A stretch of DNA of 64,000 nucleotides, taken from Trichoplax adhaerens. Its lineage: Eukaryota; Animalia; Placozoa. Below, piece by piece: positions 5,353-51,100 of this stretch (positions are counted from its first letter, which is position 1; each line of letters starts with the position of its first letter). The stretch lies in the NCBI RefSeq assembly GCF_000150275.1, contig NW_002060962.1, positions 310,001 to 374,000 on the forward strand, read 5' to 3'. A model generated the notes under the pieces. The model was not told where the DNA came from and did no database searches. It saw only the letters and a list, made by a program, of their open reading frames with translations. The position numbers were made by a program, and so were the translations under genes.

Positions 5353-8159
5353 ATGACAGACTCATTTAAGGTTTGGCTGCAAACAGTTTGCAAAGATTTT
5401 TCAGAATTAAAAAACGAAGAGAAAACTATCTGCTTGAAGGAATTGATAGAACTTTGTGGACCTTCTCAGTTATTTTCCCTTTGGCATCAATTTAGTCCAG
5501 TTCTACACTGCGATTTCTTGCAGTATTTACCGTTGGAAATAGTTTATAAAATCTTGCGTTATGTCCAAATCGAGCATGCCTTGCAATGCCGATTAGTAAG
5601 CAGAAAATGGAATCAAGTTATCTGTCGCTGTATTCCGTTATGGAAAAGTGCCTGTAGTGACGTTGGAGTTAATGTTGATAATGTTTTGTTCAAGAATAAG
5701 CATTACAGCGCTTGGAGAAAATTATATCTGCAATGCAGGACGAAGCTTAAGGCGGTATCGAATACATGCTGTTATGTTGAAACCAAACTAGCTGGTCATA
5801 CATTGCCTGTTAGAGCTGTAAAATATTACCAAACTTTACTAGCTACAGGTATGAATATTTGTCTGGGATCTAGAATTTATCAGTGGTAATCATACTTTGA
5901 TGCATGACGTGTGACGATGTGAAAATATGTTCGATATCTTGTTATTGATGACTATGCTTAGGACAACGATTGTAGAATACAAAAACTGCATGTGTTATGA
6001 TATTATAGCTCTTGATCAAACGCGATTATTGTTACTGTCCTATACTGTACCATGGACTTCTAGATACTGTACCTAGAAGTCTACGCCTATATCTACCCTT
6101 TTACGAGGTTACAATGAAGAATGCTATTATTCGATTTGTTTCTATCATTACTGTAGCAAAGTTATGACTAACACAGTATGTGTAAACTAAAATTTATAGC
6201 ATAATATTGAATTGATATACGTATTAATTCTCTATTCTACTGCATTATATACTATGTGTAGGTTCCGATGATAGGACTGTACGCATTTGGAGAAAAATAA
6301 ATGATCAGTTTCACTGCAATCATGTCCTTCAAACGCATTCATGTGCAGCTTTAAAGTGTGATGCAAATATTATTTTGACGGCTTCTTTCGATACATCGGC
6401 AGCCGCCTGGAATTGGCAAAGTGGCCAGCTAATCCAAAGATTTAAAGGACACACTGGAGCAGGTTAATTTACTGTATATGAAATTATGATTTATGCGAGC
6501 GCAGTGAGTAATAATATTGCATAATAACTCGTTTCGAAATCTAGTTGTCTATACAAATAATTTAAGAATTGTTTTACGTTCGTAATTGTTCTTCTGCTTG
6601 CATTACAGTAATAGAAGTTATTTTCTGTACTGTTGATTATTGTATTATATGATATTGAAATCTCAAATGCAGTTCTTGATGAACTTGAAATTTATTGTAG
6701 AATACTGTATACTGTACAGTATAATGACACATTTTGTCGTTTTTTAGTAGCTAGTCATGTCAACGAAATTAAAATTTAAAGGAGCTTAATTTACCTAATG
6801 TCAAATTTCTATTTCAGACTTATACGTGTATATATGTATGTTATGATCAGTGCATAATCCTCTTATCCATGGTTTATTAGGACTATATTTACAAATAAAA
6901 CGTATCAGCCCAATACTATCCATAATAATCCATTCCTACCAACAATTGAATCTCATTGTTTCACCAGTTTCCTATTGCAATTTTAATTTTCTCTTAGTTG
7001 GGATATTAAAACACTTCTATTATAATACGGTTAGAGATGTATGAGCAGATTTTAGAACCTTATGATTTGTTTTGTCTTTGCATCAAATTCTATTACTAGT
7101 ATACTGCCTAGATTATGATCTAGACCAAGATTTACTTGTTACTGGCTCCACGGATAAGACAGTTAAAATTTGGAAATTATCATCAGGAAGCCTACTAAAA
7201 ACTTTACGTCACGACGAGTGGATTCTAGAGGTAATAATGTATCTCAGATGTAACAAGTGATGCACTTAAATATTAGAGTAGCACATTCTAGACCTCAAAG
7301 ATTGGGCTAAAGTATGAATTTTCATATAGGTAAAACTAGCCAAATCTTTAGTTAATGGCGTGAAATTCGATAAGGAAGATCTGCTGCTAATTGTAAAAAC
7401 GCGTCATATCCTTTCGGTGTGCGAGATATTATCTATTACGAAAGTTGAAAATATGCTGTATTCAATTTTATTTCTTTAACGATTGTATTACTGAAATCTC
7501 AGTTAATACTTTTTCAAATAGATCTCAATTATTGCTGAATCGTTTCGCGAGAAGTTAATCTATCCACTCACAACTCTAAACAAGGACGACCAATTTTATC
7601 CTACAATGCAATTCAACGGTCATGTGATTGCGTGTGCAGCAGCTAGTGGCTTATATTTTTGGAGTATATCCTCGCTATGCTGTATCAAGTACGTACTTCT
7701 TCAGCTTTCAAATTTATAGCTGAGACCCACGTATGCTGTACTGCAGTCTTTAACTACTGAAACAGTGCTGTACCCTAGCTAGTTCGTTACTATCTCATGT
7801 ACTGATATATGAATAAATATGTGGGATTTTACTTTAGATTTATTCCTTCAGAGGGAGATAAACGACTGGTCTCGTTTGGTAGCGCTTTAACAGTGATCCT
7901 TTACAGAAGATTTGAGGGAGATATTTTGCGTATTATTGACACAAAGACTGGTTTAGAACGAGCTGCAATTTCTTTCAGTGATACTTTTGAAGTGATTGAA
8001 CCTTGTACATTAAATTGGCTCGATGACATATCTATGATTCCGATGGATAACGAACCTCTGTTTGTGATGTCTCCAAGTGCAACGAGAAAACTAGATTTTA
8101 ATGTAATTATAGTGCAATGGAAAGACCTTAAAAAGGAACATGTAAGCGATTCTGTATGA
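5353..8159 (+). CDS. FBXW2: F-box/WD40-repeat protein 2 (6 coding exons)
   Basis: Exons 5353-5848, 6262-6462, 7100-7230, 7330-7416, 7522-7688 and 7838-8159 join in frame at GT-AG sites. F-box DFLQYLPLEIVYKILRYV..CRLVSRKWN; WD repeats LATGSDDRTVRIW, QTHSCAALKCD..LTASFDTSAAAWNW..FKGHTGAV and LVTGSTDKTVKIW. The N-terminus (FKVWLQ..F..L...EK...L..LI.L.G..QL) and the THSCAA motif match FBXW2 specifically. Probable 5'UTR intron 5162-5336. Confidence 0.9.
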
Positions 8160-12015: not shown

Positions 12016-12029
12016 GTTTCTATAGCAAC
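12016..12029. promoter_or_regulatory. RFX X-box (GTTTCT-AT-AGCAAC)
   Basis: Full match to the X-box consensus GYTNYY-AT-RGNAAC. It lies ~20 nt downstream of a strong donor (TG|GTGAGT at 11998) that probably ends a non-coding first exon of the CCDC60-like gene. Confidence 0.6.
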
Positions 12030-15193: not shown

Positions 15194-18100
15194 ATGCTAT
15201 CCGTGAATGCTCATTATAATGTAAGAGATATTATCGATATTAAACCGTTACCAACGCCGTCATGTATTGGCGAAAAGGTATCAGTGAGAAGTTCAACAAC
15301 TTACATTAGCCCTAGTTTGAAAAAAGATCAATGGAAAAATAACCATGAAAGAAGAACTAAACAAGTCACTGAGTGTGGCTATCGATCTGTGCCTCACCGT
15401 CCTTATAAGCCCGTTGGCGAAATGTGCCTTGATGAAAAGCAGCTAATACTATCTGCTTTAGGCCAAAGCAATAATCATGTAAGTTTAAAAAGAATTATTA
15501 GTTATCGTCGATACATTATTCGTGTAAGCTACAATGATGTTACAATCGAATAACTTAACTACTTTAGGCTGATCAAGATGGAGGAACAAATACACCAAGC
15601 GATAAAGGCTTATATCACGATATCGCTAGAGGCGATAAGGTTAGTTTCTAAAATTCTATTGTATAAAAATATCTTTTTGGATAAATTTATTTGTTTCGCT
15701 ACCCTTTTTTTGTTATGCTTTATTTTAGTCGAAAGTGACAATAAGCAGTTATAAAAAGTTGTTAAAAGTTCAAGATTTAGTCAATAAAGATAGGTAAGTG
15801 CAGTTTTTTAATAAGTTCCTCTTTAATATGTAGTTTTAAGTATCTAAACTGTTTTCGATTCATATTCGATTACAATGCAGCTTGTAGTCGTACGCATTTT
15901 ATCTTAATTCGTTGATAGAATATTATACTTAATTACTAGTGATCGAATTTCTAAAATTAAGCTTGGGCATGGATTATTTCAAATTATTAAAGACGAAGAA
16001 AAAGCTAAGGTAAACCCATTTACAATATCAATAAAAGTAATAAAATTTTCGGCTACAAAATTAACTTTAGTCAATATTATGAAATTTTATACGACGGTAT
16101 TATTTTAACATCATGATTTGAATTTTCGATTGATATCAACGTGATTGCTGTACGATATTGTAATCCGTGTTCAGGCACAAAAGGCAGTCACTGAAGAGAT
16201 AGAAGCAAAAGCTAGAGCTAACAAGCAGTGGAAACCATCGAAGGGAGAGCCTGATTCGTCGTCAGACGATGATGATGACATAGGTTTCCGTGAGGTTGTC
16301 CAAAATTATTTGATAAGGTATGGCAAAATTTAGTAAGCCTCTAGAATATCTATCTATTTACAGATGTCAGAGAGATCCCTACAGTAAATGATACTGCCCA
16401 ATTCAAGTATCCCTTTAGAAAAATAAGTGTAAAAGTGCTCATGTTGGGAGAGTTAATCATTAACTGATTTATTATTTTATCCGACTTGTGCTTTATGACA
16501 TAGGTATCAAACACCTTCGTTACAGAAAGATAATCTGGAATTGCCATCTACTACGTCAAGTCCGATTGGAGTAAAATTTACACCAGTTAGTGCTCGCCAA
16601 ACTAATAATGGCGAGTATTCGCGAATAAGGTAGGCTGTAGCGGAAATTCTTTGTGCTGTAACTGTCATAATTCTTAATGTCATGGTACTATACAATACTA
16701 GAAATGTAAGAAATACTAGTTAGAAAAGATAATAGTTGCACTTTTTTAATTTGGAAAATCACAATGGAATGATGATTATTTGTATTAATAATTAATTCTT
16801 AATGATTAGGCGCTAGCTTTAGTTGTGGATCGGATCTACGAGTATCACTGTAATTTACTACTACATTTATCGTATGGTATTTAAACTGATATTACTTATA
16901 TCCATAGACATATGATCATGTGATACCAGTAGTTATTCATTTTTTATGGCTTCATATATACATCATAAATTAACTTGATATTAGCTGTAATTATTCATGT
17001 GCAGTACACTGTTTTCGTTTACTAGTAAATTTTATCGTATTGTAAATAACATACCCTAGTTATTATAGTTTAGAAATCAAAAATGATGATTTTCACATAC
17101 GAGTGAAATCAATTACAATCTAACTGTTACTTAATCTTGTCGTAATTATAGCTTGGATGGATCACCTTATGGCGATACGAAGGAACATAGTGGCCGTTCA
17201 ACAGAATCGCCACATCCGAACTTTAGGTTACATCGCAAGCATTACAGATCGCGAAAAAGCTCTTCAATTCAAGTTCGTCCTTTTTCTCCATATTATTCCA
17301 GTGTTGCCAGTTCACCGATCCAATCAGACAGGTATAATTTAGTATTTACAGCTGATGGAGAGTGATCGTATTTATTTACTATCAAATCTCTAATCCATAT
17401 GATAACAATATTTTCAATACTATAGAGAACATATCTTTCGTCAACTATGTGTTATTCAATGGCTTCTGGAAGCTACAGCATTAGAATTGGGTTATATTAT
17501 GGTTCCTATTTCTGCATGTTGGAAATTGAAGTAAGTTTAAGAATGAAAATTTGTTCATAAATGATGTTTTCTGTTAAAGTTGAATCTTCATTTTAAGTGA
17601 ATCAAATGACGGAAAAATGTCGCGTAAACGCCAAGAAAAGGATAATAAGAAAGCTTTGGATAATAAATGGGATGCATTATGCAATAATCCACATCAGTTA
17701 TCTAATATTGTAAGATTTCGTATTCATCGAGATAGCAGTTTACATTTGAAATAATGTACTTGTATATGTACATTTCAATATTCTAAGTTAATGTTAGGAA
17801 ATGTAGTAATTATCCTGTAAGCGAAATCAGTAGCTGTACACATTTTTTTGATATTGTCATATTCACTTTAAAATGTTTAGATCAAAATGCCTGATAAACC
17901 AAAAACTGCACGAGGGCAGAAAATTCTAAAGGAAGGCTGGCTAGTCAAGCGTAGTCGTAACAGAAACGCTATCAATAAAGATGCCAATTATCGATCTCGA
18001 TACGTCCGTTTAACGAAGGATTACCTGATATATTATCTTAACGAGAAATTGGTTAGAATCACTTTATTAAAATATAATATATCAATCCCATTTTAAGTAT

Positions 18101-21100
18101 AGAAAGGCGTCAAACTGATGTAAATAAATTTTTTACTTTATTTATCATCGATTTTACTAAATTTATGCCTCTTGAATTTCTCTATGTCATCAACTAGAAT
18201 AACTACAAAGATTGTATTCATCTAAAATATGCTACTATTGTTGAATCGGTAAAAGATCATACATTTGAAAAGAAGAAAAATGTTTTTCAAGTTAGTAGAA
18301 ATCTCTTTTATTTTTTGATACCCTGTCGATATTTTTACAATTTCTTGTGCTCTCAGATGTGATGCATTGGTAATCATTTTCAGAAACGTAGTGTTTGGTG
18401 CAACAGTTAGATATTTTCTGTAGTATTATTATATGAATAATGCCGTGATTGTATGTTTTAATCATGTCGGCTGGATTTAATAGAGTATGAAATAAATGAA
18501 TAGTGCAGTTTCAATTAGTTTTCAGGAATAGTACATATGGAAATATAAGCTAGATAACAGTGTATAGCGGGAAGTAAATCTCTCCTTTTACTTTTCTTTC
18601 GGCGACACTGCAAATACAGATTAAGCTACTGTATATACTGTACTGTGCAGTATATTGAGCCTTTGCTAGCTATATAAAAGTATGTATAAAAATGGCAGTG
18701 GTAGAAAACTTTTTTTTGGAATAACAATTGGATTGAATGAAACTAACGACTGAGCTTATTTATATATTCAAAATATAGATTGGCCAGAAAAATGATTTTT
18801 TATATCTACTAGCTCAAAGCGATAGTCATCGTGAAGATTGGCTGAATGCAATACGAAATGGTAAAGTAAAAAATTTCTTACCTGTTATGTAATTCATGAA
18901 GGCTAAAGTCCAAGAGTCATAAAATCATTATAAAACGTTTTCAATTTGAAATTAACATTATGGTATTTTCTATTAGCTTGCATGAGACTAAGAAATAAAA
19001 TGGATAAAAAATTTCACCCTGGGGCTTTAACTAAAGGTGAACGATGGTCTTGCTGCTCTCATCTGTCTAGTGCTGAAGGTTGCGAAGATGCTTTTGACTA
19101 TACGCTAGGTATGAAATGATTTACAGTTCATGTAAATGATCCACTTTAGGATGTCTCATTTCATGAAATGGGTCTGGAGTTAAATTTGCGAGCGTAATCT
19201 ATACAGTGTCCATTAGTTATATACAGTATAAATATATTTATTACAGACTAATATAAAGGACTTTTTATTTCTAAATAGATACTAAGGTTATTAAAGAAGG
19301 TTGGCTTACCAAAAGAAGTCGCAATCGCAAAGATCCCAAAAAAGAAGCCAATTATCGTGATCGCTATGTTAGAATGACTACAGAGTGCCTGTCTTACTAT
19401 ATTACGAATAAAGCGGTAAGTATTGTTCGAGAACTAATAAGGACATAATTTTTATTGAGTAAGTTTTAGTTCGTTTACAGTCAATCGTAGCATGGAGTTT
19501 ATCGTCTTACGATATTACCATAATATAAAAAGTAGTAAAAGATTGAATCAATTAATAGAACTGATGATCATCATTTTGTTCTTATTGATCTCTTGAACTA
19601 TATTTAGAACGCTGTACCTAAAGATTCCATGAAATTAAAAGATGTGACAATTGTAGAAGCAGTTACCGATGGCACATTTGGTGAACGAAAATACTTCTTT
19701 CAGGTCTTTAAGTTTTTTTTACCTAATTGTAGTTATCATATATTACGAAGTCTGCATAATAGAAAGGTGCTGATCTTGATTGCTTTATCCAGTAGAAAAA
19801 ATAGCATTATAATGCGCTAACATGTAACAATAGAAATTTTGCAAATCTCCATAGTCGGAACGATAAATTTTTATGATTGCTACAGGTTGGATCAAAAGGA
19901 GATCTTCTTTATGCTCATGCTATGAACCCAACTGATCGTGACGAATGGGTATTAGCATTACGGCAGTGTAAGTTTGCTTTTCTATACGGCTAGATATTAA
20001 ATGAATTTAAGCAGTTTATTTCCTTATTCTAACTGACTGAATTAGGTCAAAAAATAAGTTGTACCCTCAAGTATGTGAAATGTGGGGTTATAAATTTGAC
20101 CTCTTTTACATCATTATGTAGGCTGTCAGAGATTAAAACTAAATATGGATCGGCGCTATCATCCTGGTGCCTATACTGATAAATGGAGCTGTTGCCAAGC
20201 GGTTGATCTTTCGCAAAATGGTTGCCAACATGCATTTGATTATTCTACTGGTGAGTACAACGTAAACGATGTTTTAACTATTTGATTCCTAAAAGTTGAC
20301 AGTAATAATTGAATGACCTTAGAATGATCATAAATACTACTGCCCTATGGTAAGAGATTTGTTCGAATTACGATTATTTTTAATTTTTAATATCGTAATA
20401 CGATATACAGCATCAATTGCTCATGTCATGAAGTAAAGAAGCGTAGTATTCGCTCATTTTAAATGTACTATTGCTATGTATGGTAGATCTTACAGAAACA
20501 TTGTATTTTAATTGAACTAATTCTAAGTGATGCAAACTATATAGAATTGTCAACCGTAGTTAAGAAAGGCTGGGTAGTAAAGCGGAGTCGTGGACGTGGA
20601 AAGAGTAAAAATGCTGCAAATTATAGGGAACGATTTGTTGTCTTGACAGAAGAATTTTTATCATATTATGGAAATGAAGCTGGAGTAAGTATTCTTTTAA
20701 TTCATAAAAGCAATGTAGTAATTAACTAAGGGATGGATAAAATTGTTATTGCTGTATGCATATTTAAATGCATTAATAACTAAGTACTTGTGCACTCTGA
20801 GCTGGTATGATATCTTATGCAAAAGTATTAATTTGTTTTGTTTCTAGGAATATAAAGATTGCATTAACATGAAGCATGTCTCTATTGTGGAACCTGTTAA
20901 TGATGGAACGTTGGAGAGAGATTTCGTCTTTCAGGTTATTTCTTTTTCGTTTGTATAATTGCATTGATATTAGAAACATTAGAGTTGGTTAAAAGTTTCG
21001 TTACCAGCAAATATTGAGAGGTTTGATTCACGGAATTTTCATTTGCTATTATAATTGTAATCTGAATCCTACAAACTAAAGGAGTTTGATAGTAATTTTA

Positions 21101-24100
21101 AGAAATCAGTCTTCTTTAAGGATGGAACAGGAATAGAACAATACGTGTACTGGACTAAAATAATTTATCTATAGATATTAAATATAGATATACCCGTGCG
21201 TTAAAAACATATATTTTGGGGACTGCATACACTTATACCTTTACTTTTGTCATGACATAGGTTGGGAGTAAAGGAGATATTTTATATATATGTGCTCCTA
21301 ATGAAGAAGAACGAGAAGATTGGATTGTAGCTTTAAGATTTGGTAAGTAACGATGATATGAAATGTCAGACATTACAAGGTATCTAGTAAGTTAGTCAAA
21401 ATTGTTCAAATTTTAGACAGATAAGAATCATTTAAAGTGATTTTCACGGGTGATGTCATACAATATTGATAAGGTCACTACCATATCCTGAAACCTAACA
21501 ATAAAAGACTGTATGATCTGCAGTATGCATACTTTCTTAGAGTGATGTTTAAAAATATGGAGGTATTGCACAGAAAACTTTTCTTCCGTATCAGAGTTGA
21601 TTTGACCATAAATGAGCAAATTACCAAGAAATACGTTATTATTTTGCTACAATATGCAGTGCTACAAAACCTCAAGAAGGAGTTATTTATTTTTTAGGCA
21701 GAAAGTATACAGTTGGTAATAGTTAGAATTACAGGGTTGAATGATATAAGAGTACTAATTGAAGATCGAAGAAGGCGCTATTTGTTTATTACATCTCATA
21801 AAAAAATCAGTAGATCTTACATCGATACTATTGTATCTCACGGAAGATTTTAATTTATGCTGTATTTATTACTTAAATAGTAACTCAACAACTGCATAAC
21901 AAGATGGAAGATAGATTTCATCCTGGAGGTTTTACTAGGAGTAAATGGACATGTTGTGATTATCCTTCCCTCGATGAAGATGGGTGCCAGAGAGCGTTTG
22001 ATTATAGTAAAGGTAATTTAAAAGCCGCTATTGTAATAAATTTACATTATTCCAGGGTCAAATATACTTCAAAGTGCAAATTGAATAATCTTTTTTGAAA
22101 TTAGTGCTAGCATTTAAACTGTACATTGGTATAGGTAATAAAAAATTTGTAGGCTTACTTATTCTTAAATAAATCTGAAACTTGCAATTAAGCGACTATA
22201 TTCTATCACTAGGTGTTGCATACAGTCCTAAAACAGAAGAAGATTACTACCCTATGCCAACTGATGATAGTTTATACGCTTTTAATGGTAATATTAGTCC
22301 ATTTATGGTTGGTAGCTCAACGACACCAAAAGCTGAGACAGCTATTAATATTAAAAGCTCACGTCGAGCGTCTTTAGCAAAATCGAGCGATATTAACCAA
22401 ATTACAAGACGTGTATCAATGGCTATGCCCCCAACTATGGAAGGTATTGTAACTGGCAGGAGATCATCAATGGCTGTTCAAGCAGAAGCTATACCTCTGA
22501 GCAGCAATAAGAGACATTCAACAGCTGCTTCAAAACCGACTGATTTTAGTCAAATAACTAGGCGAATATCATTAGCCGTAGGTAAAATCCCTACTCAAGT
22601 TCCACTGACCCCTGGTGGACAAAATGAAAATGCACCAAAAAGCAAATGGCCAATTGCTGCCTTACGAAGTATACAAAAATTTATGCAATATACACAACAT
22701 CGTCGAATTAGAACATTAGGAAACGTAAGTTTATAATCATTATACTGAATATTGTGCTATTTCAATGCAATCTTAATTAAAAATGTCCGCATAAGCTAAC
22801 AATATTTATTTCAACTTTTACTGGCTGTATGATATCTGATAATCGTAAGGCTACAACTCCATTTATACTTTTTACGTGCTTTTTATTTACAAGGCTGAGG
22901 ATGTTAGCAAGGACAAAATTAGCGACGATGCTAAAATTAGGGCATGGATTGAAGAGTTTGGTGGCATAGAAGAAGATGACCGCCAGCGAAAGAAAAAATT
23001 ACGACCGCAAAGGTGATTATTATAGCTATATTTTTAAAGTAAATGATGACATGGATACTATACTAGCTGGGGTACCGCTTTATTACATTTTGTGAAGCTT
23101 TAAAAACATTTGATTTGATATCAAGATTAATTATTGTTAACAATAATAGCCAGTCATAGCTGCTTGATAGGTAAATCGAATACACTTAAATTCTCAGTCT
23201 TCAATTTATATTGAATATGAATAAAATTATCTCTTACGTCTAGCGCACCTGTTAAAAATACACCGGGTACTGCAGGTATTGAGAGATACCAAGATTTAGC
23301 GTCAAGAATGCGACAGAAGTTTATTGATGTTGCCAAAGAAAACGAAGAGTTACTACACGATCAGTTAGATAGGATAGAAATGTAAGTACTACGTAATTCG
23401 TACAGATTAATTTTGAATAATATTCACTTTTTACTCTATGTGTCATTGTCAGCCTGTTGTCGACGATGATATTTCGATTGATTGTTACCCACTTATTTAA
23501 ATAGATGGCGAAATGATTATAAAAATGATTTATGTTTACCTAAAGTTTGTTCTTTACTTATATTAGGAAAAGATCTCAAAAATGCGAGCTTCGCTTCTTT
23601 GCTATTGAGCCCAAGACTTATGTTCATCGGGATTTAGGAAAAATGCGACATAAGATAAAAAAAATCGAAATACGCCAAGCTAACAAATCAGTCCATCGAC
23701 CTTGGTAATTGTCATTTTTATTTAGCTAACAATCACAATGCTTTACCTACTACGTGATAATATAGAGTTGTTCCATTTAAGCTTTCAACCAACTTATCCA
23801 CTTTTTTCCTATTACTTCATGATAGGTATATTAATCTAGTCGACACTTTACCGGAAAGTATTCGGGAAGATCGTCAATGTTCTCAAACGTTAGAAAGGAT
23901 TTCATCCCACGCTAAGGTAACTAATAATTACAAATAAAAGTATTCTACGATACGACCATGGTAGACTAGGCTGTTTTAGCTACTTGTTGTGAAAATAGTA
24001 TATTTTAATCGTTTAAATAACAAATGATATTGCATTATGTATTATTATAGATTGATGGAATAGTTCCGAGCTCTGTCCAGTTAATTCGAGTACTATCTGG

Positions 24101-24412
24101 GTTACGTCATTGGGAAATTTGCTCTCCAGATATTAGTGCAGCTATAGAAGTAAGTGATGTATGATTATTTATGTACTGGTATATTTCTTATTTAGAGATG
24201 TCAGAGTAACTGCTATAAAAATTTTATTTCTAGTTTGAATAATAGTAGTATAATAGTAAATTAATTTTTTACCTAATCTTATACAGTTTGTAAGAGAAAA
24301 GATAGTAGAAATGCCTGATTACGAATATGAAGAATGGTTACGATCCATTTTACCTATGAAAAAGCCCAGAGCTGAATCTGATCCAACAAGTACGAACAAA
24401 AGTGACTCGTAG
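15194..24412 (+). CDS. CCDC60: CCDC60-like protein with three inserted PH + Btk-type zinc-motif modules (~29 coding exons)
   Basis: All exons from ATG 15194 to TAG 24412 can be joined in frame at GT-AG sites. The N-half has IKLGHGLFQIIKDE, VRPFSP, EHIFRQLCVIQWLLEA..MVPISACW and KALDNKWDAL; the C-half has PWYINLVDTLPE and LIRVLSGLRHWEICSPDISAAIEFVREKIVEMPDYEYEEWL. Both match CCDC60 as I recall it (PLFRQLCALHWLLEA; LRIWELCSPDIAVAIEFVREHII). Between them lie three PH-Btk modules (17881-22012) and a low-complexity exon (22213-22724). Confidence 0.8.
17881..22012 (+). repeat. Three tandem duplicated PH + Btk-motif exon cassettes (17881-19108, 19279-20250, 20545-22012)
   Basis: Each cassette has 4 exons with the same intron positions and phases (0,0,1,1): KxGWxxKRSR..ANYRxRyv.lT...L.YY | ..KD.I.lK...IVE.V.D.T......FQ | vG.KgD.LY..A.....R..W..AlR | ..M...F/YHPG.....W.CC........GC..AFDYs. 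Confidence 0.9.
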
Positions 24413-26227
24413 AAATGACTTCGTAAATTTTCACCGATCAAAGGAAAAACCTATATCAACATCATATTCATATTATTTCATGTCGTAAGGATTATTGATG
24501 TAAATGATAGTGTAATATCATACCCCGTTAATAGATGAAGATGTATACTTGTATATTAAATGCTATATCTACTGCGCATCAATTCTAAAATTGGTTATTA
24601 GAGATGACATTGATCTTCCTGATTTCATTTAGGAATAACGGTTCGTATTAATATACAGATATGATTATATATTGATGATCTTCTTCAGGCCAATTTTTAT
24701 TTATATCTCACTCTAAAGTTCATAATTTATTTAAGATACAAGTCGAATAATATTCAAATACTCCTCTTAATCTTACGTAATTGATTGTATTCGTTGAAAA
24801 TGTTTACTAAGGATAATTTTTTATATCACTTTTATACGAGATTAATGCATATTAACCATGTTCATATTACAATAATTGAGTTAAGAATAGGAAAATTGTC
24901 ATTTTTAAATAATAACCTGTCATGAACTTTGCTCACCGTACGTGTCTTAAAACTGACAGTATCCGGCCATTATTGTCATAACGCTGGGATATCAAAGATA
25001 ATCATATTGCATTAATCTGATTCATATTTTATGTATATATATGAGCATAATTTTTTTATTCTATTGATCTATGGTATCATTGATCCATTATATTTGCATT
25101 TTATGTAAAAAATTTTCATCAAATATTAGCACAATCATACAAGTAATTTATAATATCTAAAATTATTTTAAAGACAAATTTTGAAGCTATTCAAATACAA
25201 ATAAAAAGGACGCATTTAAGAAGTATATTTACTCAATTGATTCAGTTACTTAAAAATTGATTTTAAACCCTGGGGTTAAATAGTTCACAATCGATAGTAA
25301 ACTCGATACATTACAATTATCGTACACGATATGAGAATAGTCGCTGATAAACGAGTATAAGATTTAGAGAGATTATCTGTCCTGAATACCTGAAAAGCGA
25401 TTTTACGAATAATGATAAATTAATGATTGCGTATCGTTTCAATTTATAATATTACTTTCTAAATTCGTGCCTCATGCTCTAAGAGATACCGTAGCTATTT
25501 GGATATCAGCAATGAGAAGGACTAATGAAAATTTAACTGTAAATTAATGATAATACTTTCCAGATCCTTAATCAATGCTAAAGACAGTACCTTACCTAAT
25601 TTAGGTACGATATTTACTTACATGAAAGATTACTAATAGAGTACCAGCTTACTAGATTCATATCATAAAATGTAGCAGAGTTAAGGATTACCGACAGATA
25701 CCCTAAACATAATCAAATCTATGGATTAAGGTGATTATTACTGTTAAACACCTTTGATGATATAATTACGAAAGAATTGATGAATAAATAAATTTCATCG
25801 TCGCTAAACCTACTCTAGAAACGTTTTAGTATACTGTATATATTTAGATAAAAATCATGTTTATTTTAAGTTTGATCTTATTGATGAGCTTCTAAACCAT
25901 AAAACGTAGATAGTATCTTACGAAAATATTGGCTTGACCTTAAAAACACATAAGTATCAGTAGATTAAGTGTAATTCGTACACGTATATACAACACCCGG
26001 TAGCAAGAACAGAATAAATTGCCGGAGATCAAGTTTGATATTAAACTGTAATTTAGATAGATTTAATACTATAAATTTTCTGTAAGCCTATGATATAATC
26101 GATAACAGAATTTACTGTAGCTGATCATATACAGGAGATTGTTGAGGTACTTGATGTTAAAATGCTGTACTGTAAAATATAGAAAAAATTCGATAATAAG
26201 GACAACAGTCTGACATTGTAAAACTAC

Positions 26228-29200
26228 TTATTTCGTTTTATCAATCCCAGTTCAACAGCTTTTAGTAAACCACGTTCAGCGTTGGCTACAATTTCTTTTT
26301 TATTTATATCAGTTTCCTGCGAAAGAACCATTAAAACTTCCAAGAGCTTGCTTTCTACAACCTAAACGACAAATTTACAGCATTTTACAATGCGAACATC
26401 GAACAATTTTTACTCATAAATCTGGTCATACTAACTTCGCTAGCTATTGCTTTGTTCGCTTCAATTAGGTTTGCAACAATGTATATTCCCCTGCAAAGAA
26501 AGATATTAAAGTGTATTGGTAAGAATGACTGGATAAAGCCAAGCTAGTTACTTCTACAAATACTAAAATTTGCAGCCTTACCTGTGCTGTAATTCTAATT
26601 TTTCAGAAAGTAATAGTTCTTGCATGATTTCTAGCCAAGGTTTGACCTAGATGAGTGTATGGGGGAAAATACGCTTAAAATTATCAAAAATTTTATTCTA
26701 AAGACGCTAAATCAAGCTTATATTCATTAACATACCTGGATAATCTGCTTGCAAATATTTTCATTGGACGACAGGATTGCCAATGTACCACTTGCAGCTC
26801 TAACGTGTACATATAAAGATTACGTTATCCATGAGAGTAATTTACTGTAGCAGATACAGACATAAGAAGCTAATAATGCAATAAATGTCTATTCATTACA
26901 GTCATGTTTATAAGTTAACAGGCATAGCAAGATAATTTACTGTACCTAGCTAATTCAAAATCAGATTCGCCACTATACAAAGTCAGCAGCTTAACGCGAT
27001 CTGTTTTATCGTTTAAGTATTTTTCTGCAGCCTATATGCGACATGCATAAGGAGTCATTAAGGGCTAAATCTTAAATCTAACGGTGGGAAAACGAATTTA
27101 AGTCGTTTGACAAGTAAATATACTTCTTCGCAATTGACTAGGTTACACATAGCCTCTGTAGCCGCTCTCTTTATAAGTTCGTGATCGTCAAACATCAACT
27201 GTTCAATACTCGTAAATCCCTTTTCCGCCATAATTTTTCTCCTAAAGGAAACATACAAATACAACATCGTCGGTATCATACTTTTGCAGCATTTCTCTCA
27301 GCTATACCATTATATTTTACCATTTGCAGTCATTAAAACCCATGCAAAAGTTTACGATTAAATCTTCAGGTTTATTCAATATCAAAATTATTAGATCTAA
27401 ACTACGCAAACAGTATTACTGACGGCGGTAATTCTATACACAAGTGTTACCTAACAGTGTCATTGACTTGAGCTAGATTAGTCAAAGCCATTAAAGCTTC
27501 AAATTGTTGTATTCCCTTAAATATAAAAAATATGTAACGATCAGAAACATTTCATTGAATGAAAGGTAAGCTACATCAACAGTTAGATTACAGGATTAAA
27601 CTTACAGAATCTGAAGAAAGTAATCCAATTAAAGGGCGGACAGTTTCTAATATCTAATTATCAAATTTAGCCAGGGTATAAACATCATTAAAAGACGGAA
27701 TTCTTATACTATGCAATAAGTAAAAGAAATTACGAAAATTTTCCTTGTGAATACTAGCTAAATTAAAATGCTTGAAATTGATCAATGTTACTGACTCTTT
27801 GCCCAGAGAATGCTAATTCAGGATTAATTGAAATTCCTATCTTTGCGATCGCCTGAGTTGCCAATGACTTTCCTTTATCTGTGCCACTTAAAGCTAGTGA
27901 GCACAAAATCTGTTAAAAAGTATGCGAATACATGATCAACAGATGCCAAGATAATCTAAGGATATAAATTGATTTACCTTTGTCCCACCTTGCTGTACAA
28001 TAACACCTCGGTGTTTAGGCTCAGTGGATAAGGCTAAAAATACTCTATTCCCGTAAATAGTAAAATGCATAAGTAATAATTTAGCTACAAATACAAGAAA
28101 TTTAATAATTTGATCGATAGTATAAAAGAGACCTGTTTAAAACATTAATATTATACATATAATCTCTTACAATCACTAAAAGCGAATTGTAATGACATAG
28201 CGTTACTGTGTAACGACTAATTTCATTAGCTAACCTTGCCAGTTTTTCTTTACAGTTATCAGACTTTTCATCTAATCCCAGGTTGACTAAAGTCACTACG
28301 ACATCGTTCTAACATAAGAAAAGTAGCACAGTAAATGAATACTTATGACAAGTACTTTGATAGCCAGTGAGGTTTTGTACATGGCTTTTCTACCTTTATC
28401 ATGGTTAGGATTCTTTTTTCGACATATTTTTCACTATCCTAAAATTAAATAGGAAAAGTAATTCATAAATAATTGTGTAATTGGATTAGGAAAAATTGAC
28501 GACTCTACCATAAAACTATAATTACCTTTTCGTGAACTTTCGGAATTTTATATTGAGCAAATTTAGCAAGCTCTTCAAGTTCAAGATTTTTTTCCGGTTT
28601 ATCATAACTATTGGTAACATTTACTAATGTTGAAGCAATTCCAAATGTTACTGCCATATCTTTAGTCTAGTTAGAAAGTATTTAAAATATCATAAACCAC
28701 CATTAAATGAGGTGTCGTAATTGCTTGAACAAAGGACGTTATACAGTGAAATTGAATGTTTTATTACTCTATATACATTCAAATTCATAATGATAAATTG
28801 GATAACCTTAGCCATATTGAATAGAATCTTTAAAGCTTCTGTATCGGAGACCAAAGCATCCTAAAACCGATATCAGATGACAAGTATTATTGCAAGTCCT
28901 ATTGGAATAGCAACGTGATTTTTTGACTATTGATGTTACAGTACCTTAGCGTCAGCATCCAGAGTAATTAGGGCCAATGCTTCTATAGACCATTTCTTTA
29001 GATCCGAACTCCTTTCTCCCCCCACTAGATAACTAAGTTACAATAGGTTTATGAATGTAAAATTCACTTTTCGCCATAGCAATCAGTTATTTGACTGACC
29101 TTCTAATAATAGAATACAATTCCAGTACGGATTCTTCCGGAAGCCAATCTTTTACTTCGCTGGCGTCAACAAGACCTATTTTACATAAACCCTGTGGTAG

Positions 29201-32200
29201 TAAAGTAAATAAGATTTAGTGGAAGTGATATTTTATAACATATAATATCAACGTTCTTCTAACAGCATAGCAGATATTGGTTGAGGAACTAACCACTAGA
29301 GCCCGAATGCGTATTTTTCTGTTTTTCATCTCATAAAACACTTTCATCAACGGAAAGATCTAATCATTATAATAACATGATTTGTTACAGGTGAATGAAT
29401 AATAAAGCAATATTTTATAAAGATAATCATACCTGCGATCTAATTTCCAGGCATTTATTCTTATCGGAACATATATGAGTGAAAACTTCGGTAGCGGCGC
29501 ACTAAATAAGAGTCCCAATAAAATGATATGAGTGAACAATAATGTCCAGTATAAATGTAATTTTGACTTTAGCTATTGTCATGGCATGTAGTAAAAACGT
29601 CCAATATAATATAGCTTGATTAGAGAATTTTTATGCAGTAATGCATAAATAGATCTCATACAGTATTTTCATAAAGAAGTTACGTAGTATTACTTTCGCA
29701 GCCAAGTCCTTCGACGCAATTAATTCAAACAATTTCTGAAGGATACTGTCTGTGTACGCAATTTCGATTCCAACCTCACTAACTCCCTAGGATTATATTA
29801 ATAATTTGGCCAGAATTATCCTAAAACTCTTGTTTTCATATAGATTCAACTACGTTGAATTAATTTTGTGCCTCTTACAACAAGGAGTGCAGATAGAGCG
29901 ATGACCCCTCCAATATTCATATCAATATCGTTGCTATATTGCATATGCTCTCTAGTTGTTATAATTATATCGATAAAATCACAACGTCATAATTCATAGA
30001 GGTCAATTGTTCTGTTAGAAATAATTGTAGTAATTTTCCTTACCTAATAAAAATTTCACATTGCCTTCGAAAAATTAAGCGGCTTTGGTCATTTCTATGA
30101 GAAAGTTTGTTTTAATAAATTGCTAATATTAAATATTACTTAGAATTGTGTCATTAGTTTGTCGACTTTGATTCGTAATATTATTTAAGTTATCTGAATA
30201 ATTCCAGTACTGTGACAATGAATTGATAACTCGTTTATTAATTTAATAAAATTTTTGGTTAGTTAATAGCAGAACTTGAGAAATTAAAATTGTTTCTTCT
30301 TACCGGAGCGATTTATACAACTGGAATAAAGCTACTGATACATGCATTTGACATTCAGATGTTGTATTTTCATTTTGATCTTTGGAAGCACTAGTGTCAA
30401 TCATAAAATATGGAGCAGAGTCTGCTGCGACTTTTAAGAGTTTGCTTAGTCCTAATAAAGATTTGAATTTTAAGAAATGCTACTCAGTTTGCCATTAAAT
30501 ATAGGTTATACAAGCAATAATCCATGAAGCAGTAATTTATAAAATAATATGCATGCGCTACTTAATTTTTTGGAGGGGATAAAAAATCGAAAAGTCCCTG
30601 TAATATGATACCTTTGCATTCGATGAACGTTTTCGTCATGCCAGCTTCGGGAATTGCATATACCACAACATTAATAGCAGCGCTTCTACCACTGATAGTA
30701 ATGCTATAAAATGATAAAATATTTTGAGGTTAAAGTAATAGATTTCCTGAGTTGAATAGTTAATGCTTTTACCTTTGATTCGTCATTGCATGAATTAGCA
30801 AGTCAAGTAACTCATCAATGTCCACTTTGTTATCTTTTTTATAGAAGGATTAAGAATTCTTTTATATACACTTTCATGGATAAATGTTATAATGAAATGA
30901 TTACGAGTACAGTATTTGTGATAGTATAGCATACCTATTACAATAGCTTCATTGGGAATCTTTGCCGGATTGTCGTCGCAGCCGGTTAATGTAGTCAGAG
31001 CAGTTTGTAGGAATAAAGCGATTGATTGGCACAAATCTTCTTCTGGCTGCAAGAGTAATTGTTTTTATTATGAAATATAATAAATATTTTTAATAAATTA
31101 CTTGGTATAGTCCCATAATAGAGGCGATTGAGATTATTCGATCTAAAGGATTACATATACGAGTATCTAGACTCAAAAACTGATGGTCTGGTAATCCCTA
31201 CCGACGATAACATCGTGAGCAATCTTGATTTAGTCATTTCCTTGAGAGCAACAGACATCTACACCATCGATTGATTACAAAAGGAACGAATTAGCGTCGA
31301 TAACATCAGATGGTATAAGAAATAATAGCATTGAAGCAAATTTACCCTATTTCGATGACCTTGACAAATGCGTATAAAAAGTTTAACAATGGAAGATTTT
31401 ACTTCTTCTGTTTCGCTATCTAGTGATGATAGCAGTTTCCAAGTTGCTTCTATTAGAGGAAGAAACAAATTGTTAGTATAGAGTAGGAAAAACTTAATAG
31501 ATTCGCCTGAATTTAGATATCATTTTACTGTAAGCTACAAAATGACTTTATAGATAGTTTATTGTAACCTTCTCGAAATATGAATTCAGAACCAGCTGCT
31601 TCCTTGGCTACTACGCGTAAATTATTAAGAGCCTATTAGGAAAGTTAACTGTAAGTCAATAATTAATTCATTTTAAATAAAACATGATTTTAGAATTTGG
31701 TTCTTAAATTAAAATAATATCCTACCTTCATCTTTTGGTCATTGGTACTAGAAGAGTTCAGAACTACTGATAGCATTTGTTGTACCTTCGTGCTGGTTTT
31801 ACCTAAAGCTTGGGACTATGCATACAAGACCATAATTAGCTTTACAATCATTGAAACTATTCTAATGATCACTAAAATTGTTATTTTTCTTAAAATTCTT
31901 TCAAACGGAGTTCTATGCCCTTGTAATAGCTTAAGAATAGCATTTTTAACGTAGATTTAATTTTGTGTTTATATCTATTCAAGGTGATAGCTAACTTTGT
32001 GAAGTTATCATGTAGTTTACGTGAATGATTTCAATCTGAATTCATCATGACATAGTATTACAATACAATCGGTCGAAAAAATATGATGCAGTGGTAGAAC
32101 TAGTTTATACTTACTTGTGAAGTCATTTGTATATTAAGTTGGCGTAGCATATCTATCACAGCTTGATTCTAATTTTAGTGGCAGTTTCAAACATTAATCT

Positions 32201-41446: not shown

Positions 41447-44400
41447 ATGAAATCCAAGAAAGCCGATCATCTTAAAAGAAAGGTAATGTTACATTTTATA
41501 GCCAATGTTGAGATAAATGAGTGGAACCATCATTAGCTACAATTTAGCTTGGTTTAGCAGCTTGCTGTAGTACTTTGAATTAGCAAACATTGCAAAATAG
41601 TGAATGTAGATTGGCACTTTGATTGGCCCAAAATTATACCTTGTAAGACGTTCTTATCATCATACAGGTGTAGCCATATAGGTAGAATGATTGCTACGTA
41701 TTTTATAGAGGCATACATCAACTACATTATCGGTTAAAAAAAATTTCTTATTTCTGGCAATACACACGCATATACAGTATACTGTACAACACATACGAGG
41801 ACGGGCATACGACTCGTGTCCAATTTTGGTTTCAAATTGTACGGGACTATGCACGATACACTTCTCGTAGGCATAATAGGCAATAGATATACCTAGAACA
41901 GGTTATATTGAATTACTGATACAGCTTATTGGATAATATATATATATATGTATATATTTTAATTGACCATATAGGAAAATGCTTCACAGTCCGATCATGC
42001 TGATACTGATGAAGGCAAAGTTGTCAAAAAGAAGAAAAAAAGTTTATATGCACCTCTGACTCGAGATGAATTATTTACCATCAAAGAAACTGAAAGTCTC
42101 TATCGATCTGGATTATTTCGTATGCAAATTGATGAATTATTAAAAGAAGTTAAATTAAAGAAGAAAAGAAATAAAAAATTAGATCTTTTTCTTCATGCTT
42201 TACGTAACTGCTTAATCAATATACCCGATGACAATCAACAGGAACTTGAATTTGATAGTTTATCCTGCAAACCTGATGGCATTCAGATACCTCTTCATTT
42301 AAAAGATGTGCAGACTATCAAGGGCAAATTTATATTTAAAACCCCGACTGTCATTGCTGTTGTTGGCAGCTATATGATTGGTACCATTACCAAGCCAATA
42401 GTCAACGTGGATGTTACCGTAGAGATACCGCAGGTCTCAATCGCTATACTTATAATTAAAATTTAAAAATTGATTAGTGTACAAAATTAAATTTATTAAC
42501 ACAAGATATACTCGTAAAGTAATAATTTGTGTTTTGTGTATTTCAGGAATGTTTAAATTCTAGAGATCACATCAATGCTAGATATTATTACCGACGTGCA
42601 CTTTACTTAGCACATTTGGCTTATCATTTAAATCAGAGTGATATCTGTCAAGAAGTCCAGTATTCAACAATGAATGGAGACCCACTTAAGCCAATCTTAG
42701 TTATAAAAGCAGCACCGGAACGATTTAATCGCTACTTTACCATTCGTTTATACCCTTGCATTAATCAGTCAGCGTTCAAATTAAGTCAATTAAAGCCAAC
42801 TAAAGATAATATAAGATATGAATTTTATCCAACGATAGAGAGTAAATTAAATGAAGAAACTCAACGGTTAGGCCCGCCAACACCTCATTACAATCATGGT
42901 ATATTGGTAGATATGAGCTTCGGCCGCCACCTGAGGGAGATTTATCAAGCAACGCGACAAAGTCAATCTTTAATTGATGCCATTACCTTAATCAAGATAT
43001 GGCTATACCAACGTGAATTTAATAAAGGGATAAACGGATTGAATGGATTTCTTGCTTCAATGTTTTTGATTTACTTATTAAAGAAAAAGAAACTCAACTT
43101 GCAAATGAGCTCTTATCAGATTTTAAGGATCTTCCTTATACAATTAGGTATCATAATACGATTGTACGATAAAATAAGATGGTATTAATTATTACACAGA
43201 TAGAAATCAATAAAATTCGAAGAAAAATTTACATACAAGCATTAACATTTTTTATCACCTGGACTTTTTTGTTGGAATAGCGTCATCCGACTGGTCTACC
43301 AATGGAATAACACTTGCGGAACAGGACAATTCCAATATTGTAATTTCAATATTCAGATTATGAGCTTCTTTTATATTTTTCAAATATCTATATAACAGTC
43401 CGCTCTAAATTTTTTATAGCCATCTACTGCAGAATTTTCTACAGTTTTTGAAGTGGTTTTTATCGACTCTTCTGGATACTTAAATTTAGCCGCCAACTTA
43501 ACGAAAATTTCATACGATGAAGTTAGTAACAATTATAATCCTGCAATAGTAATGCTCTTAATTATTACAGTTCGGTATTATAAATTTATATTCATCTTTA
43601 CAAATTGTACGCTCTTAAATTATTATATTCTGATTTGTTACAGTTACGTCATGCAGCCTCCTCGTCACTGCGACATCTCGATAGCAGCTCTAGCGATGTT
43701 TTCTCTGACCTTTTCGTGAAAAAAGTACCATACTTTACAAAATATGATCACTATATTACGTAAGTCCTTGACAGCTGTTATCATTAAAAATGCATGGAAA
43801 AAAAGTATTCAAAATAAGCTATTATAAATTAAATTGATGATATTTTTCGGATTAATGGTAATAAACATGATTTCTGTCTTTATTGGCTAACCATTGAATC
43901 TGTACGTTGAATTTAAACCAGGTTAAAACAGTTACCACAAATAGAAAAAGCTAATATTGGACAAGAAGTGTTAGAGTATCTTATCAGCAGATGCAATCAT
44001 TTACGACCAGTCATGCTACGCTGGTTAATGGTTATCCTTCAAAAAGGTTTAAATAAAAGAGTTAAATTGATTTCTGTTATGCCTGAAGATATTTCAAAGG
44101 TAAAATTTCGAATTTTAAAATACTATCTAATATATTTTATTCAACTATGAAATGCTTTTTATTCGCTTATAGTGGCCAATTACTAAGATGCCGCCTGCAG
44201 AAAGTGAAACTGTAACCATCGGCTTATCACTTGATACAGAACAATATTCTTCCATTGTAGAAATGGGTCCATCGGCTGAAGACTCACAGGTAGATATGAC
44301 TTATAGATTAAATTATATTTATTATTTCTGTTATTTAGGTTCTTGATACCATTCGTTATACTATATAATAAACTTCGATTAGGCTGCGGAATTATTTAGA

Positions 44401-48157: not shown

Positions 48158-51100
48158 TTATTGCATGAGATGTGGCTGGGTAAACGGTACCTTCGAATTA
48201 AATTGATTTGCTGCTTGTGGATACATGTTATATTGAGGTTGTGCGTTCATTTGAGGTAGTGGCTGTTGTTGGGTTGTGCCTCCTTGAGACGTAGAATATA
48301 CCCCTTTTGGATCGATAGGTTGCTGTTGGTGATAGTATTGTGATTGTTGCACTGGAAATTCATTAGACGTCCCAGATGACTGATTTCTACCGTAATGAAT
48401 ATGGTTTCGTATAAAAATGTTAAAAGCACTAATATCTTTTGCATTGACAAGAACTTGTATCTTTTCAGCAAAGCTAAACAGTATACTTACACTGGATTGT
48501 ACATGTTCTAGAATAAAAAAATTGTATAAAAGTATAAGTACTGAGAAAAGGAATTAAGAAGGAAAATTTGTTGCTTTTCTAAGTGTCGTATATACAGTAC
48601 CTGTTGCGATTGAACAGTTTGCGGCTGTTGATTCAATCCCTGCATCATTGGGTGCTGTATAATTTCCAATTTTACCCAAATCAAAAATATTTCAGAAATA
48701 TAGATGGTAGTCTACTTTTGATTTAGAAGCTTCACACCTATAATTAAAAATGACTTTGAAAATTTACCTGTTCCGGCGAAAAATTTTGTGGACCTGTAGG
48801 CTGTTGTTGGTAGCCAAGAGTATTAGGTTGCTGCGGAATCTACCAAGATACATATAGTATAATTATCCGTAAAGAATATGCTTGTAGGCCTTTTCTGTTA
48901 TCGTAGAGGTTAGTGAATTTAAATACGCCAAAAATAAGTTCAGTAAGGATAACATACCATATGCTGTTGCGGTACAGGCTGCTGAGGTACAGGTTGCTGA
49001 GGTACTTGTTGTTGAGGTACTTGTTGTTGAGGTACTTGTTGTTGAGGTATGGATTGCTGAGGTAAAGGTTGCTGAGGTACAAGTTGCTGAGGTGAAGATT
49101 GTTGAGGTAGAGGTTGCTGGATTGGTGCCATCCTTTGATTATCTTGCAAACGGTTGGATTGGAAGTGCTGCTGTGACATCTCTGTAAATATAAATGTAAA
49201 CATTGCATTAACGAAATGGAAATTTTTCTCAAATTAAAATAAGGACAAGAGAAAAGTACCAGGTTGTAAGCCTGCTGCAGAATAAGCTGCGTAGATAGAA
49301 CTATATCGCGGCCGCTCTTGCATCAATCTATTAATATGAAAAGTAATATAAAAATTTTAGTTATTCGAATAACATCGAAAAAGCAATAGTTCATTTAGGT
49401 CAAGTCTTACTTTTGATAAAGAGCAAGAGTTTCTTCAAATTGATTTTTTAAAGTATTTACTTCTTGATCTTTACTATTGGTAATAATAATATAAAAATAG
49501 TGTAAATATTTAATTGAAACAAAAATAAGTTACTGTACAAGGTATAAAGACTCACGTTTCCAGGCGCTCTAATTTGTTAGTCACTTGATAATTCATTCGA
49601 TTACACGTATCTATAAAATGATATGATTGCGCTTGTATTAAGTAAAAATGACTATTTACCTATCTAACGGAAACATTTTAAGTTAAATTCTTCAACCTTC
49701 TAAGTCAATAAGTTCTTGAGTATCTGCATTTACAGTTATATCAGCCTTTCCAAATATCTCAAGTGTGATATCTATTTTTTCCTAAAACGATTGCAGACAT
49801 TAAAAATACGTTTTTGTGGGTGATAATTACTTTTAATTATAGATAGAAAATAACTTCTGCAAATAAATGTGATCTCAGCTTATGATTTTATTTCATACTT
49901 CGTCAATTTGAACTTCTTTATATTCGTCCATTGACGGTTCTATAAGTAAAATTCAATATATTGTAATTAAAGTAGTAATAATACTATATTACAATTTTAA
50001 ATGTTGTCGCTAGATACAAACGTTTTGCCTCTCCAAGACCATTTTGTACTTCAGATTCCTCTACTACTTCCGTCTCTAATTCCTGATGTACCTCATACTT
50101 GGGTACTTAACACCACAGGCAAAAAGTTAGTATCGTAAAAGGATGTCATAAAATTATATGTTGTTATAGAGATGAGACCGAGTAAAATTGTTAATAAACC
50201 TGGTTCATTGAGATCGGAAGTAACAAAATTTGACGGAAATAGTCCAGACCCATGTGGAGTCTCTCCCTTCCACCAGTTGGGGTCGCTATTATATCAACGT
50301 ATGAAACAGAATTATTGCATGAAGTAACCTAATCTCATACATTCAAATTGCTAGTAATAGACTTCATTGTGCTATACTACCTATCATCAATGATAGAAAT
50401 GATGTCACCAGCTTTAAAAGTTAACTCGTTATCTTCAGCGGCCTCGAAATCGTATAATGCAAGAACTTTACGTCGTTCAAGTTCCTATAATATAGATATA
50501 CATCCAACCCATTAATTTCTTATGGCCATTAGTAACATAGTAATGCACGCGCATTAGATCTATATTTGATAGTGAAAAATAATACATGGGCTACAACTTA
50601 CCTTCCTAAGTGACTTAGGAGAAGGTGGTTTAACTACAGGGTAAATACTTGATGTCGAAGTCTAATTTAGAATAGTTAAAATAGAAGTTAGGTAAGAAAC
50701 TAAATGTCATATTATAAATTCATTTTACCTGAGAATAAGTTGCAGGAGTACTAGTATTAACCGTCGTAGAATGAGAAGAATGGGATGCACCAGTTTTATC
50801 TGCATCTCTTAAAGACATTTCAATTGCTGATATAATCGATTGAAAGAATAGATATCTTTTAATGACGAATTAAATATATATTACTAAGATGTAGAACTAA
50901 ATATAGTTGAAATCTACTATCGCATGTAGCGTGGTGTCATTTGTACCTCTAGCAAGATCTTCGTCCTCTTGTAGTGCAGCTCTATCGCTACTAGGTTGAT
51001 TCTTGTTTGATGTAGAAGTGAAGTTCGGCGATTCAGTAGGATTGGAAGAGGCTGCTCCCCCAGGTACAATTTCAGGTGTAAAAGCAGGAAACTCAACACC

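Follow-up and report, generated by a model that had tools for sequence, protein, structure and literature searches.

The window analysed here is a stretch of 64,000 nucleotides from Trichoplax adhaerens (contig NW_002060962.1, positions 310,001–374,000; G000:C1395:310001-374000 in our notation), belonging to an assembly of 105,631,681 bases in 1414 contigs with ∼31% G+C, which was searched as well. On the plus strand of the window lies a gene of the CCDC60 family, the middle of which holds three tandem modules of the PH-TH type (a PH domain followed by a Btk-type zinc motif, also written PH-Btk) and a low-complexity linker. Its coding sequence forms one open frame from window position 15194 to 24412, with 28 exons that amount to 3744 nucleotides and 1247 amino acids. 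The ATG at 15194 and the stop codon at 24410–24412 fit this single frame, an in-frame TGA lies three codons upstream of the ATG, and all introns of the model are of the GT..AG type. The parts of the gene are as follows.

15194–15478, 15568–15639, 15729–15793, 15940–16009, 16175–16317, 16504–16629, 17152–17331, 17426–17530 and 17598–17709, plus strand: CCDC60-like N-half, 9 exons, the last three supported by RNA
17426–17530, plus strand: exon 8, the best-conserved DUF4698 (CCDC60) segment, profile positions 96–129, supported by PF15769 and RNA
17881–18051, 18198–18290, 18779–18860 and 18977–19108, plus strand: PH-Btk module 1, 4 exons, supported by PH and BTK Pfam matches, RNA joints and alignments
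19279–19415, 19608–19703, 19886–19967 and 20122–20250, plus strand: PH-Btk module 2, 4 exons, 444 nucleotides, intron phases 1 to 1, supported by Pfam matches and RNA joints
20545–20684, 20848–20934, 21261–21342 and 21881–22012, plus strand: PH-Btk module 3, 4 exons, 441 nucleotides, intron phases 1 to 1, supported by Pfam matches, RNA joints and the related contig L013
22213–22724, plus strand: linker exon 22, 170 amino acids of low complexity, supported by RNA joints and by alignment with P0006 and P0001
22894–23012, 23244–23381, 23567–23704, 23826–23916, 24051–24149 and 24287–24412 (stop 24410–24412), plus strand: CCDC60-like C-half, 6 exons, supported by PF15769 and L013

Modules and linker together (exons 10–22) are referred to as the cassette; these 13 exons are bounded by phase-0 introns and encode 625 amino acids in 1875 nucleotides. 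The frame of the gene was checked by joining the exons in a script. RNA contigs directly support exons 7–23, and the exons outside the RNA coverage were modelled from splice sites and reading frame and then checked by local tblastn against related genomic contigs. These are placozoan-like fragments of at least two other lineages, taken from metagenome and Logan assemblies (L013 and L015 are scaffolds of ENA ERZ23499115; L009 and L017 come from Logan SRR30664516/7). Exons 1–7 are supported by L015 and L017 and exons 20–28 by L013, conserved and collinear in both cases. A candidate for exon 2 in another frame (15578–15639) was rejected since that frame has stops in L015; comparison with the related contigs showed that the conserved frame needs two exons, 15568–15639 and 15729–15793. 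For the C-half, exons obtained by enumeration of splice-site scores were discarded because spurious extra exons were favoured, and a hand-built model checked against L013 was used instead. The RNA contigs run 1312–1392 nucleotides beyond position 23012, from which a 3′ untranslated region of ∼720–800 nucleotides follows. At its 3′ end the CCDC60 gene faces a convergent multi-exon gene on the minus strand, at window 26200–31000.

The continuity of the transcript was assessed with Logan contigs of four runs (X4, X5, X6 and X8) placed on window positions 17120–23110. X4 is a declared RNA-Seq library, and X4, X5 and X8 represent three independent studies. The contigs of these three runs consist of spliced pieces only, with a GT..AG joint at each exon boundary from 17331 to 22894. 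Exon 17426–17530 is supported by the joint 17329>17424, from which the contigs go on to 17598. Two records, X5 record 7 (3976 nucleotides) and X8 record 19 (4811 nucleotides), are single contigs that each follow every exon between 17152 and 23012 in order and extend past both ends; in X5 record 7, exons 10–22 span exactly the 1875 bases to which their lengths add up. According to the X8 contig, ∼330 nucleotides of 5′ exon sequence are located upstream of 15184. Loose ends of the RNA contigs continue upstream into exon 16504–16629 and downstream into exon 23244–23381, and the RNA-supported exons, joined in the script, yield one open frame. No exon-skipping joint across the cassette was reported in the RNA contigs. 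X6, labelled as probable RNA, covers the introns of the same region unspliced and without joints, and thus behaves like DNA or pre-mRNA. The CCDC60 flanks and the PH-Btk modules belong to one transcript and not to a nested gene. A preliminary description of this DNA had proposed, from the letters alone, an in-frame path from a CCDC60-like N-half through three PH-Btk modules and a low-complexity exon back to a CCDC60-like C-half. The RNA contigs follow this path in one frame, X4, X5 and X8 each contain the junctions 17709->17881, 22012->22213 and 22724->22894, every one of them of the GT..AG type, and fused RNA contigs were seen rather than a separate nested gene never joined to the CCDC60 exons.

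The identity of the flanks was determined with the family profile PF15769 (DUF4698). Here and throughout, matching to families, homologues and structures was done exon by exon, and the scores refer to single exons and not to the whole protein. The strongest CCDC60 match was obtained for exon 17426–17530 (profile positions 96–129, 39.4 bits, E 4.7e-10), above the cut-off of 28.6 bits, which was also exceeded by exon 27 (24051–24149; profile positions 435–459, 30.6 bits). Exon 24 (23244–23381) matched profile positions 317–348 and exon 28 (24287–24412) positions 457–478. The four matches are collinear with the genomic order, and two of the four exceed the gathering cut-off. Profile positions 1–95 and 130–316 found no match in the N-terminal 313 amino acids, the linker exon or exons 9, 23, 25 and 26 (E up to 1–10), which is a weak negative result because short exons have little power. 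A look-alike search of the ESM Atlas with the DUF4698 exon gave no usable match. By the profile search of all contigs this is the sole PF15769/DUF4698 locus, and thus the only CCDC60/DUF4698 family member, of the genome. The assignment of both flanks to the CCDC60 family, as made in the preliminary description, is borne out by the collinear matches; the account given there had left out exon 17426–17530, which has the best match and is supported by RNA. The collinear N-terminal, middle and C-terminal PF15769 matches are shared with vertebrate CCDC60, but here a cassette of 625 amino acids (three PH-TH modules plus linker) stands between profile positions ∼130 and 317. Human CCDC60 presumably has ∼550 amino acids and no PH domain.

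The modules were characterized by Pfam matches and by residue alignments (A1–A4) of the three modules with the Tec kinase of the same genome. The first exons of modules 1, 2 and 3 match the PH family (PF00169) with 22.1, 24.6 and 25.3 bits, each covering about one third of the domain; in module 1 two PH matches were found (22.1 and 16.9 bits). The fourth exons of modules 2 and 3 match the Btk motif (PF00779) with 33.6 and 28.1 bits, above the cut-off of 24, and that of module 1 scores 20.7 bits, below it. With this reservation for module 1, the exon-by-exon matches agree with the earlier proposal of three complete Tec/Btk-type PH plus zinc modules. The zinc ligands H13, C25, C26 and C35 of alignment A4, which we take to be Btk H143, C154, C155 and C165, are invariant across the three modules and the Tec gene, so that the claim that all three motifs keep their ligands holds. 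The tryptophan of the C-terminal PH helix is likewise invariant in this set. The basic β1-β2 signature ascribed earlier to all three PH domains was confirmed as KRS...YR[SDE]R in each of them. Invariant columns of A1 and A2, in the modules and the Tec gene, correspond presumably to Btk K12, R13, S14, N24, R28, T33, L37, Y39, Y40 and K53, in a numbering that has support from a paper for R28, E41 and K53 only; the position taken to be Btk K26 is Arg in the alignment of modules and Tec gene. What R28, K53 and E41 do has been described in a Tec kinase of a choanoflagellate, E41 making an autoinhibitory contact of the PH domain with the kinase domain (PMC13648279). Position 41 is Glu in the Tec gene and Leu, Ile or Gly in the modules, a change that fits the loss of this contact in a protein that has no kinase.

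No kinase or RasGAP domain was found in the frame of the transcript, where each Btk motif runs straight into the next PH domain or into the linker, and the absence of a kinase in the RNA-supported frame accords with the kinase-less array described before. The contig of the window (C1395) gave no RasGAP match. The closest solved structures to profiles of the aligned exons were those of Tec, BTK, ITK and BMX, with profiles that are biased towards Tec because the Tec row was included; the Myosin-X structure 3tfm was among the weaker PH profile matches. A single PH exon searched with phmmer against the solved structures found nothing, and four-sequence profiles were needed. Compared with the PH-TH units of Tec-family kinases (BTK, TEC, ITK, BMX and the Tec gene of this genome), the modules share the fold signature, the zinc ligands and the residues of the inositol-phosphate pocket, but they occur three times in tandem and lack the SH3, SH2, kinase and proline-rich regions. 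In GAP1-family RasGAPs (RASA2, RASA3, RASA4) a PH-Btk unit without a kinase presumably serves membrane targeting dependent on phosphatidylinositol 3,4,5-trisphosphate (PI(3,4,5)P3 or PIP3) or inositol tetrakisphosphate (IP4), as may be the case here; those proteins have a single module, whereas this gene has three and has neither C2 nor RasGAP domains. Myosin-X, with three PH domains, serves as a comparison of working principle only: its tandem PH domains, in a cytoskeleton-linked protein, provide PIP3-dependent targeting to a protrusion, but they are not of the Btk type, have no zinc motif and belong to an unrelated host protein, and no homology beyond the PH fold is claimed.

The origin of the cassette can be approached through the only Tec-family kinase gene of the genome, which was located by the genome profile search.

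G000:C1410, ∼6,179,000–6,190,150 (L012:16-5147 plus L011:4285-9850), minus strand: sole Tec-family kinase gene, with PH, Btk motif, SH3-like, SH2-like and tyrosine-kinase exons

Btk motifs above the family cut-off occur in this genome only in the CCDC60 gene and the Tec gene, and no RasGAP locus was found near two weak genomic Btk matches. The modules are 49–51% identical to one another and 27–29% identical to the PH-TH unit of the Tec gene, and the PH-TH introns of the Tec gene have the same three positions and phases as those in each module. The exon lengths are 171/93/82/132 nucleotides in module 1, 137/96/82/129 in module 2 and 140/87/82/132 in module 3. With 444 and 441 nucleotides, modules 2 and 3 form phase 1-1 units, so that the frame survives a tandem duplication. 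In module 1, which begins in phase 0, codon three is an ATG (17887) that aligns with the initiator Met of Tec, and there is an in-frame TAG directly upstream; this suggests the captured first exon of a PH-TH gene that was once separate. A Tec-type PH-TH unit would have been copied at the DNA level into the poorly conserved middle of CCDC60, followed by two internal tandem duplications of the phase 1-1 four-exon unit; the duplications appear to be old, as the modules are only ∼50% identical to one another. The intron positions and phases shared with the Tec gene fit an origin by exon shuffling at the DNA level, and with it the domain shuffling put forward in the preliminary description. The intron positions of PH-TH are also ancient in vertebrate BTK, and for this reason the shared introns point to a DNA-level origin and do not by themselves name the donor.

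The linker exon has no Pfam family. In an alignment with P0006 and P0001, which come from two further lineages, it has five invariant sites of the type used by basophilic kinases (four RRxS and one KRxS), two of which lie within a repeated QITRRxS[ML]A motif. Across the three lineages an acidic/aromatic start and a basic C-terminal stretch are kept as well. The sequence R-R-x-S with a hydrophobic residue after it corresponds to the classical PKA-type consensus, and the linker is predicted to act as a disordered phospho-switch. When the 170-residue linker was used as a query against a 50% representative library, one true fragment was retrieved (P0001); four other hits were rejected as low-complexity false matches with no passing Pfam stretch.

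Conservation was measured against the related contigs. L013 (5035 nucleotides) carries exons 20–28 in order with 63–100% identity (63–88% for the C-half exons), L009 holds exons 21–23 in order, and L015 and L017 carry exons 1–7 at 52–91% identity. The last two exons of module 3 are 100% and 86% identical to those of L013. Synonymous sites are near saturation with respect to the lineage of L013 and L015 (proportion of synonymous differences, pS, ∼0.6). The proportion of nonsynonymous differences (pN) and the ratio of nonsynonymous to synonymous rates (dN/dS) were 0.035 and ∼0.03 for the two exons of module 3 that are available, 0.095 and 0.09 for the CCDC60 C-half, 0.145 and 0.14 for the N-half, and 0.177 and 0.18 for the linker. 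The alignments thus make PH-TH, as seen in the last two exons of module 3, the most constrained part measured, and they indicate that other placozoan lineages have retained the cassette, with strong purifying selection on the parts that could be measured.

On this evidence we consider it probable, with moderate confidence, that a single CCDC60 gene has taken up a Tec-derived triple PH-TH cassette, by which avidity for PIP3 would recruit a CCDC60 scaffold under tuning by the linker. The canonical Btk pocket of each module would take up a 3-phosphoinositide head group, likeliest that of PI(3,4,5)P3, or else a soluble inositol polyphosphate. With three sites on one chain, the CCDC60 scaffold would be recruited to PIP3-rich membrane with avidity and in a steep, threshold-like manner, and a kinase of the PKA/PKG/AGC type would tune this recruitment via the five conserved RRxS-type sites in the linker. 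A locus with the Ras-binding domain of PI3K and loci with PTEN-C2 are present in the genome. For this animal, lipid binding, multivalency, the link to PI3K and a ciliary localisation are predictions. Of the preliminary interpretation, the single transcript, the CCDC60 flanks, the kinase-less triple module and the shuffling have stood, and the coupling of PI3K signalling to a ciliary structure can be put forward only conditionally.

The epithelia of placozoans are ciliated. A ciliary structure as the target is nevertheless the weakest step of the proposal, because it draws only on the expression of human CCDC60 in ciliated tissues (PMC8485144, PMC12991005). A trivalent PH-TH protein acting as an ultrasensitive detector of PI(3,4,5)P3 or inositol hexakisphosphate (IP6), which would dock CCDC60 at the ciliary base or periciliary membrane under cyclic-nucleotide-gated phosphorylation of the linker, is regarded as doubtful.

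Several observations weigh against the proposed PIP3-dependent recruitment. The Btk motif of module 1 stays below its cut-off, the residue numbering is confirmed by a paper for R28, E41 and K53 only, and the β1-β2 loop of the modules exceeds that of Btk by one residue. In some cases PH domains whose signature is good have proteins or other lipids as ligands. Of the array, the relatives yielded only the last two exons of module 3; neither modules 1 and 2 nor the joint of the N-half with module 1 could be retrieved from them. To our knowledge CCDC60 is without a known molecular function. Searches for CCDC60, DUF4698 and BTK in the supplements of a placozoan cell atlas (PMC10580291) gave no entry. 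The RFX X-box pattern occurs in the window at chance level (22 matches against 19 expected). Separately, a perfect palindromic RFX X-box-like site, GTTTCTATAGCAAC, is located at window 12016–12029, 3.2 kb upstream of the ATG; its assignment to the CCDC60 gene would require a transcription start.

In principle, the modules could be functional without being sensors of membrane PIP3, their ligands being soluble IP4 or IP6, another phosphoinositide or protein partners, and the tandem arrangement serving oligomerisation or scaffolding. The PH-TH unit of Btk itself is described as binding IP6 and forming dimers (PMC4384635, PMC11338949), and the longer β1-β2 loop would be compatible with a different ligand. 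The positions that canonically contact IP4 and PIP3 are, however, all kept in the three modules, and the genome has the PI3K and PTEN markers mentioned above. We regard this alternative as one to be taken seriously, although it is rather unlikely. Less probable still, and in our view unlikely, is that the PH-Btk exons work mainly or additionally as a nested unit, driven by an internal promoter before ATG 17887 and encoding the three PH-TH modules with or without the C-half, with the fused mRNA being one of several. Exon 10 indeed opens two codons before the ATG that aligns with the initiator Met of Tec, the in-frame TAG immediately upstream of exon 10 is as expected for a captured first exon, and RNA contigs cannot show where transcripts start. 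Yet the joint 17709>17881 is present in three of three spliced runs with the frame kept across it, the single contigs of 3976 and 4811 nucleotides lead collinearly from the N-half through the cassette into the C-half, and no unjoined start was reported.

It is very improbable that the cassette is mere evolutionary ballast, in other words a lineage-specific insertion which a disordered stretch of CCDC60 tolerates and which acts as a spacer at most, without a role in ligand binding. It does sit where the DUF4698 profile (∼130–316) finds no match, and as the total length of exons 10–22 is divisible by three, with a phase-0 intron on either side, skipping it could be harmless. But the dN/dS of ∼0.03 for the two exons of module 3 lies below that of the CCDC60 parts, all three modules retain the zinc ligands and pocket residues although they have diverged elsewhere to ∼50% identity, and no skipping joint was reported. 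A fusion that is an artefact, due to a mis-assembled genome or to chimeric RNA contigs joining two genes, is hardly credible, for although neighbouring genes may become joined in short-read contigs, each joint, as seen in three studies, is a canonical GT..AG splice that keeps the frame, and the independent genomic contigs L013 and L009 of other lineages keep the order of module 3, linker and C-half.

Elsewhere in the window, an open frame with an F-box (PF12937/PF00646, E ∼1e-8) lies at 5353–5889 on the plus strand, a large exon at 42529–43188 (plus strand) encodes Nrap domains 1 and 2 of the nucleolar protein NOL6 family (E 4e-36), and a Ribosomal_S8e open frame (E 5e-22) is found at 58519–58893, also on the plus strand. 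On the minus strand, positions 60359–61564 contain an unusually long, uninterrupted open frame of 401 amino acids; its C-terminal half is hydrophobic, and it matches no Pfam family at E up to 0.001. A tandem repeat with units of 15 and 45 nucleotides (∼10 and 3.4 copies) occurs at 48965–49119 within a minus-strand open frame of 130 amino acids.

In the literature that was searched, no paper was found on DUF4698, and none that links CCDC60 to PH or Btk domains or describes tandem PH-TH arrays; protein and architecture databases were not searched with the joined protein. The gene, a CCDC60-family member with a kinase-less triple PH-TH array, is probably contained in the public gene sets of placozoans, where it goes uncommented. 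Domain fusions specific to one lineage are common. The fusion itself is a solid finding, and its reach is moderate until binding and localisation are known. It is a clean case of the entry of a domain cassette: the introns are shared and ancient, the four-exon unit has compatible phases and was duplicated twice, and a first exon was probably captured. As far as is known, PH-TH units occur singly and guide Tec kinases and some RasGAPs to PIP3, and work on Btk now centres on the number of PIP3 molecules and the dimerisation needed for switch-like activation. A kinase-free chain of three modules under strong constraint in an early-branching animal would offer a natural experiment in the multivalent reading of PIP3, and the triple PH-TH protein a simple system in which avidity and cooperativity can be measured. 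For CCDC60, a protein of ciliated cells, the cassette attaches a testable biochemical property to the family. If the trivalent detector proves true, an animal that lacks neurons would have PI3K signalling linked directly to its ciliary gliding or feeding behaviour, and CCDC60 would have its first molecular handle.

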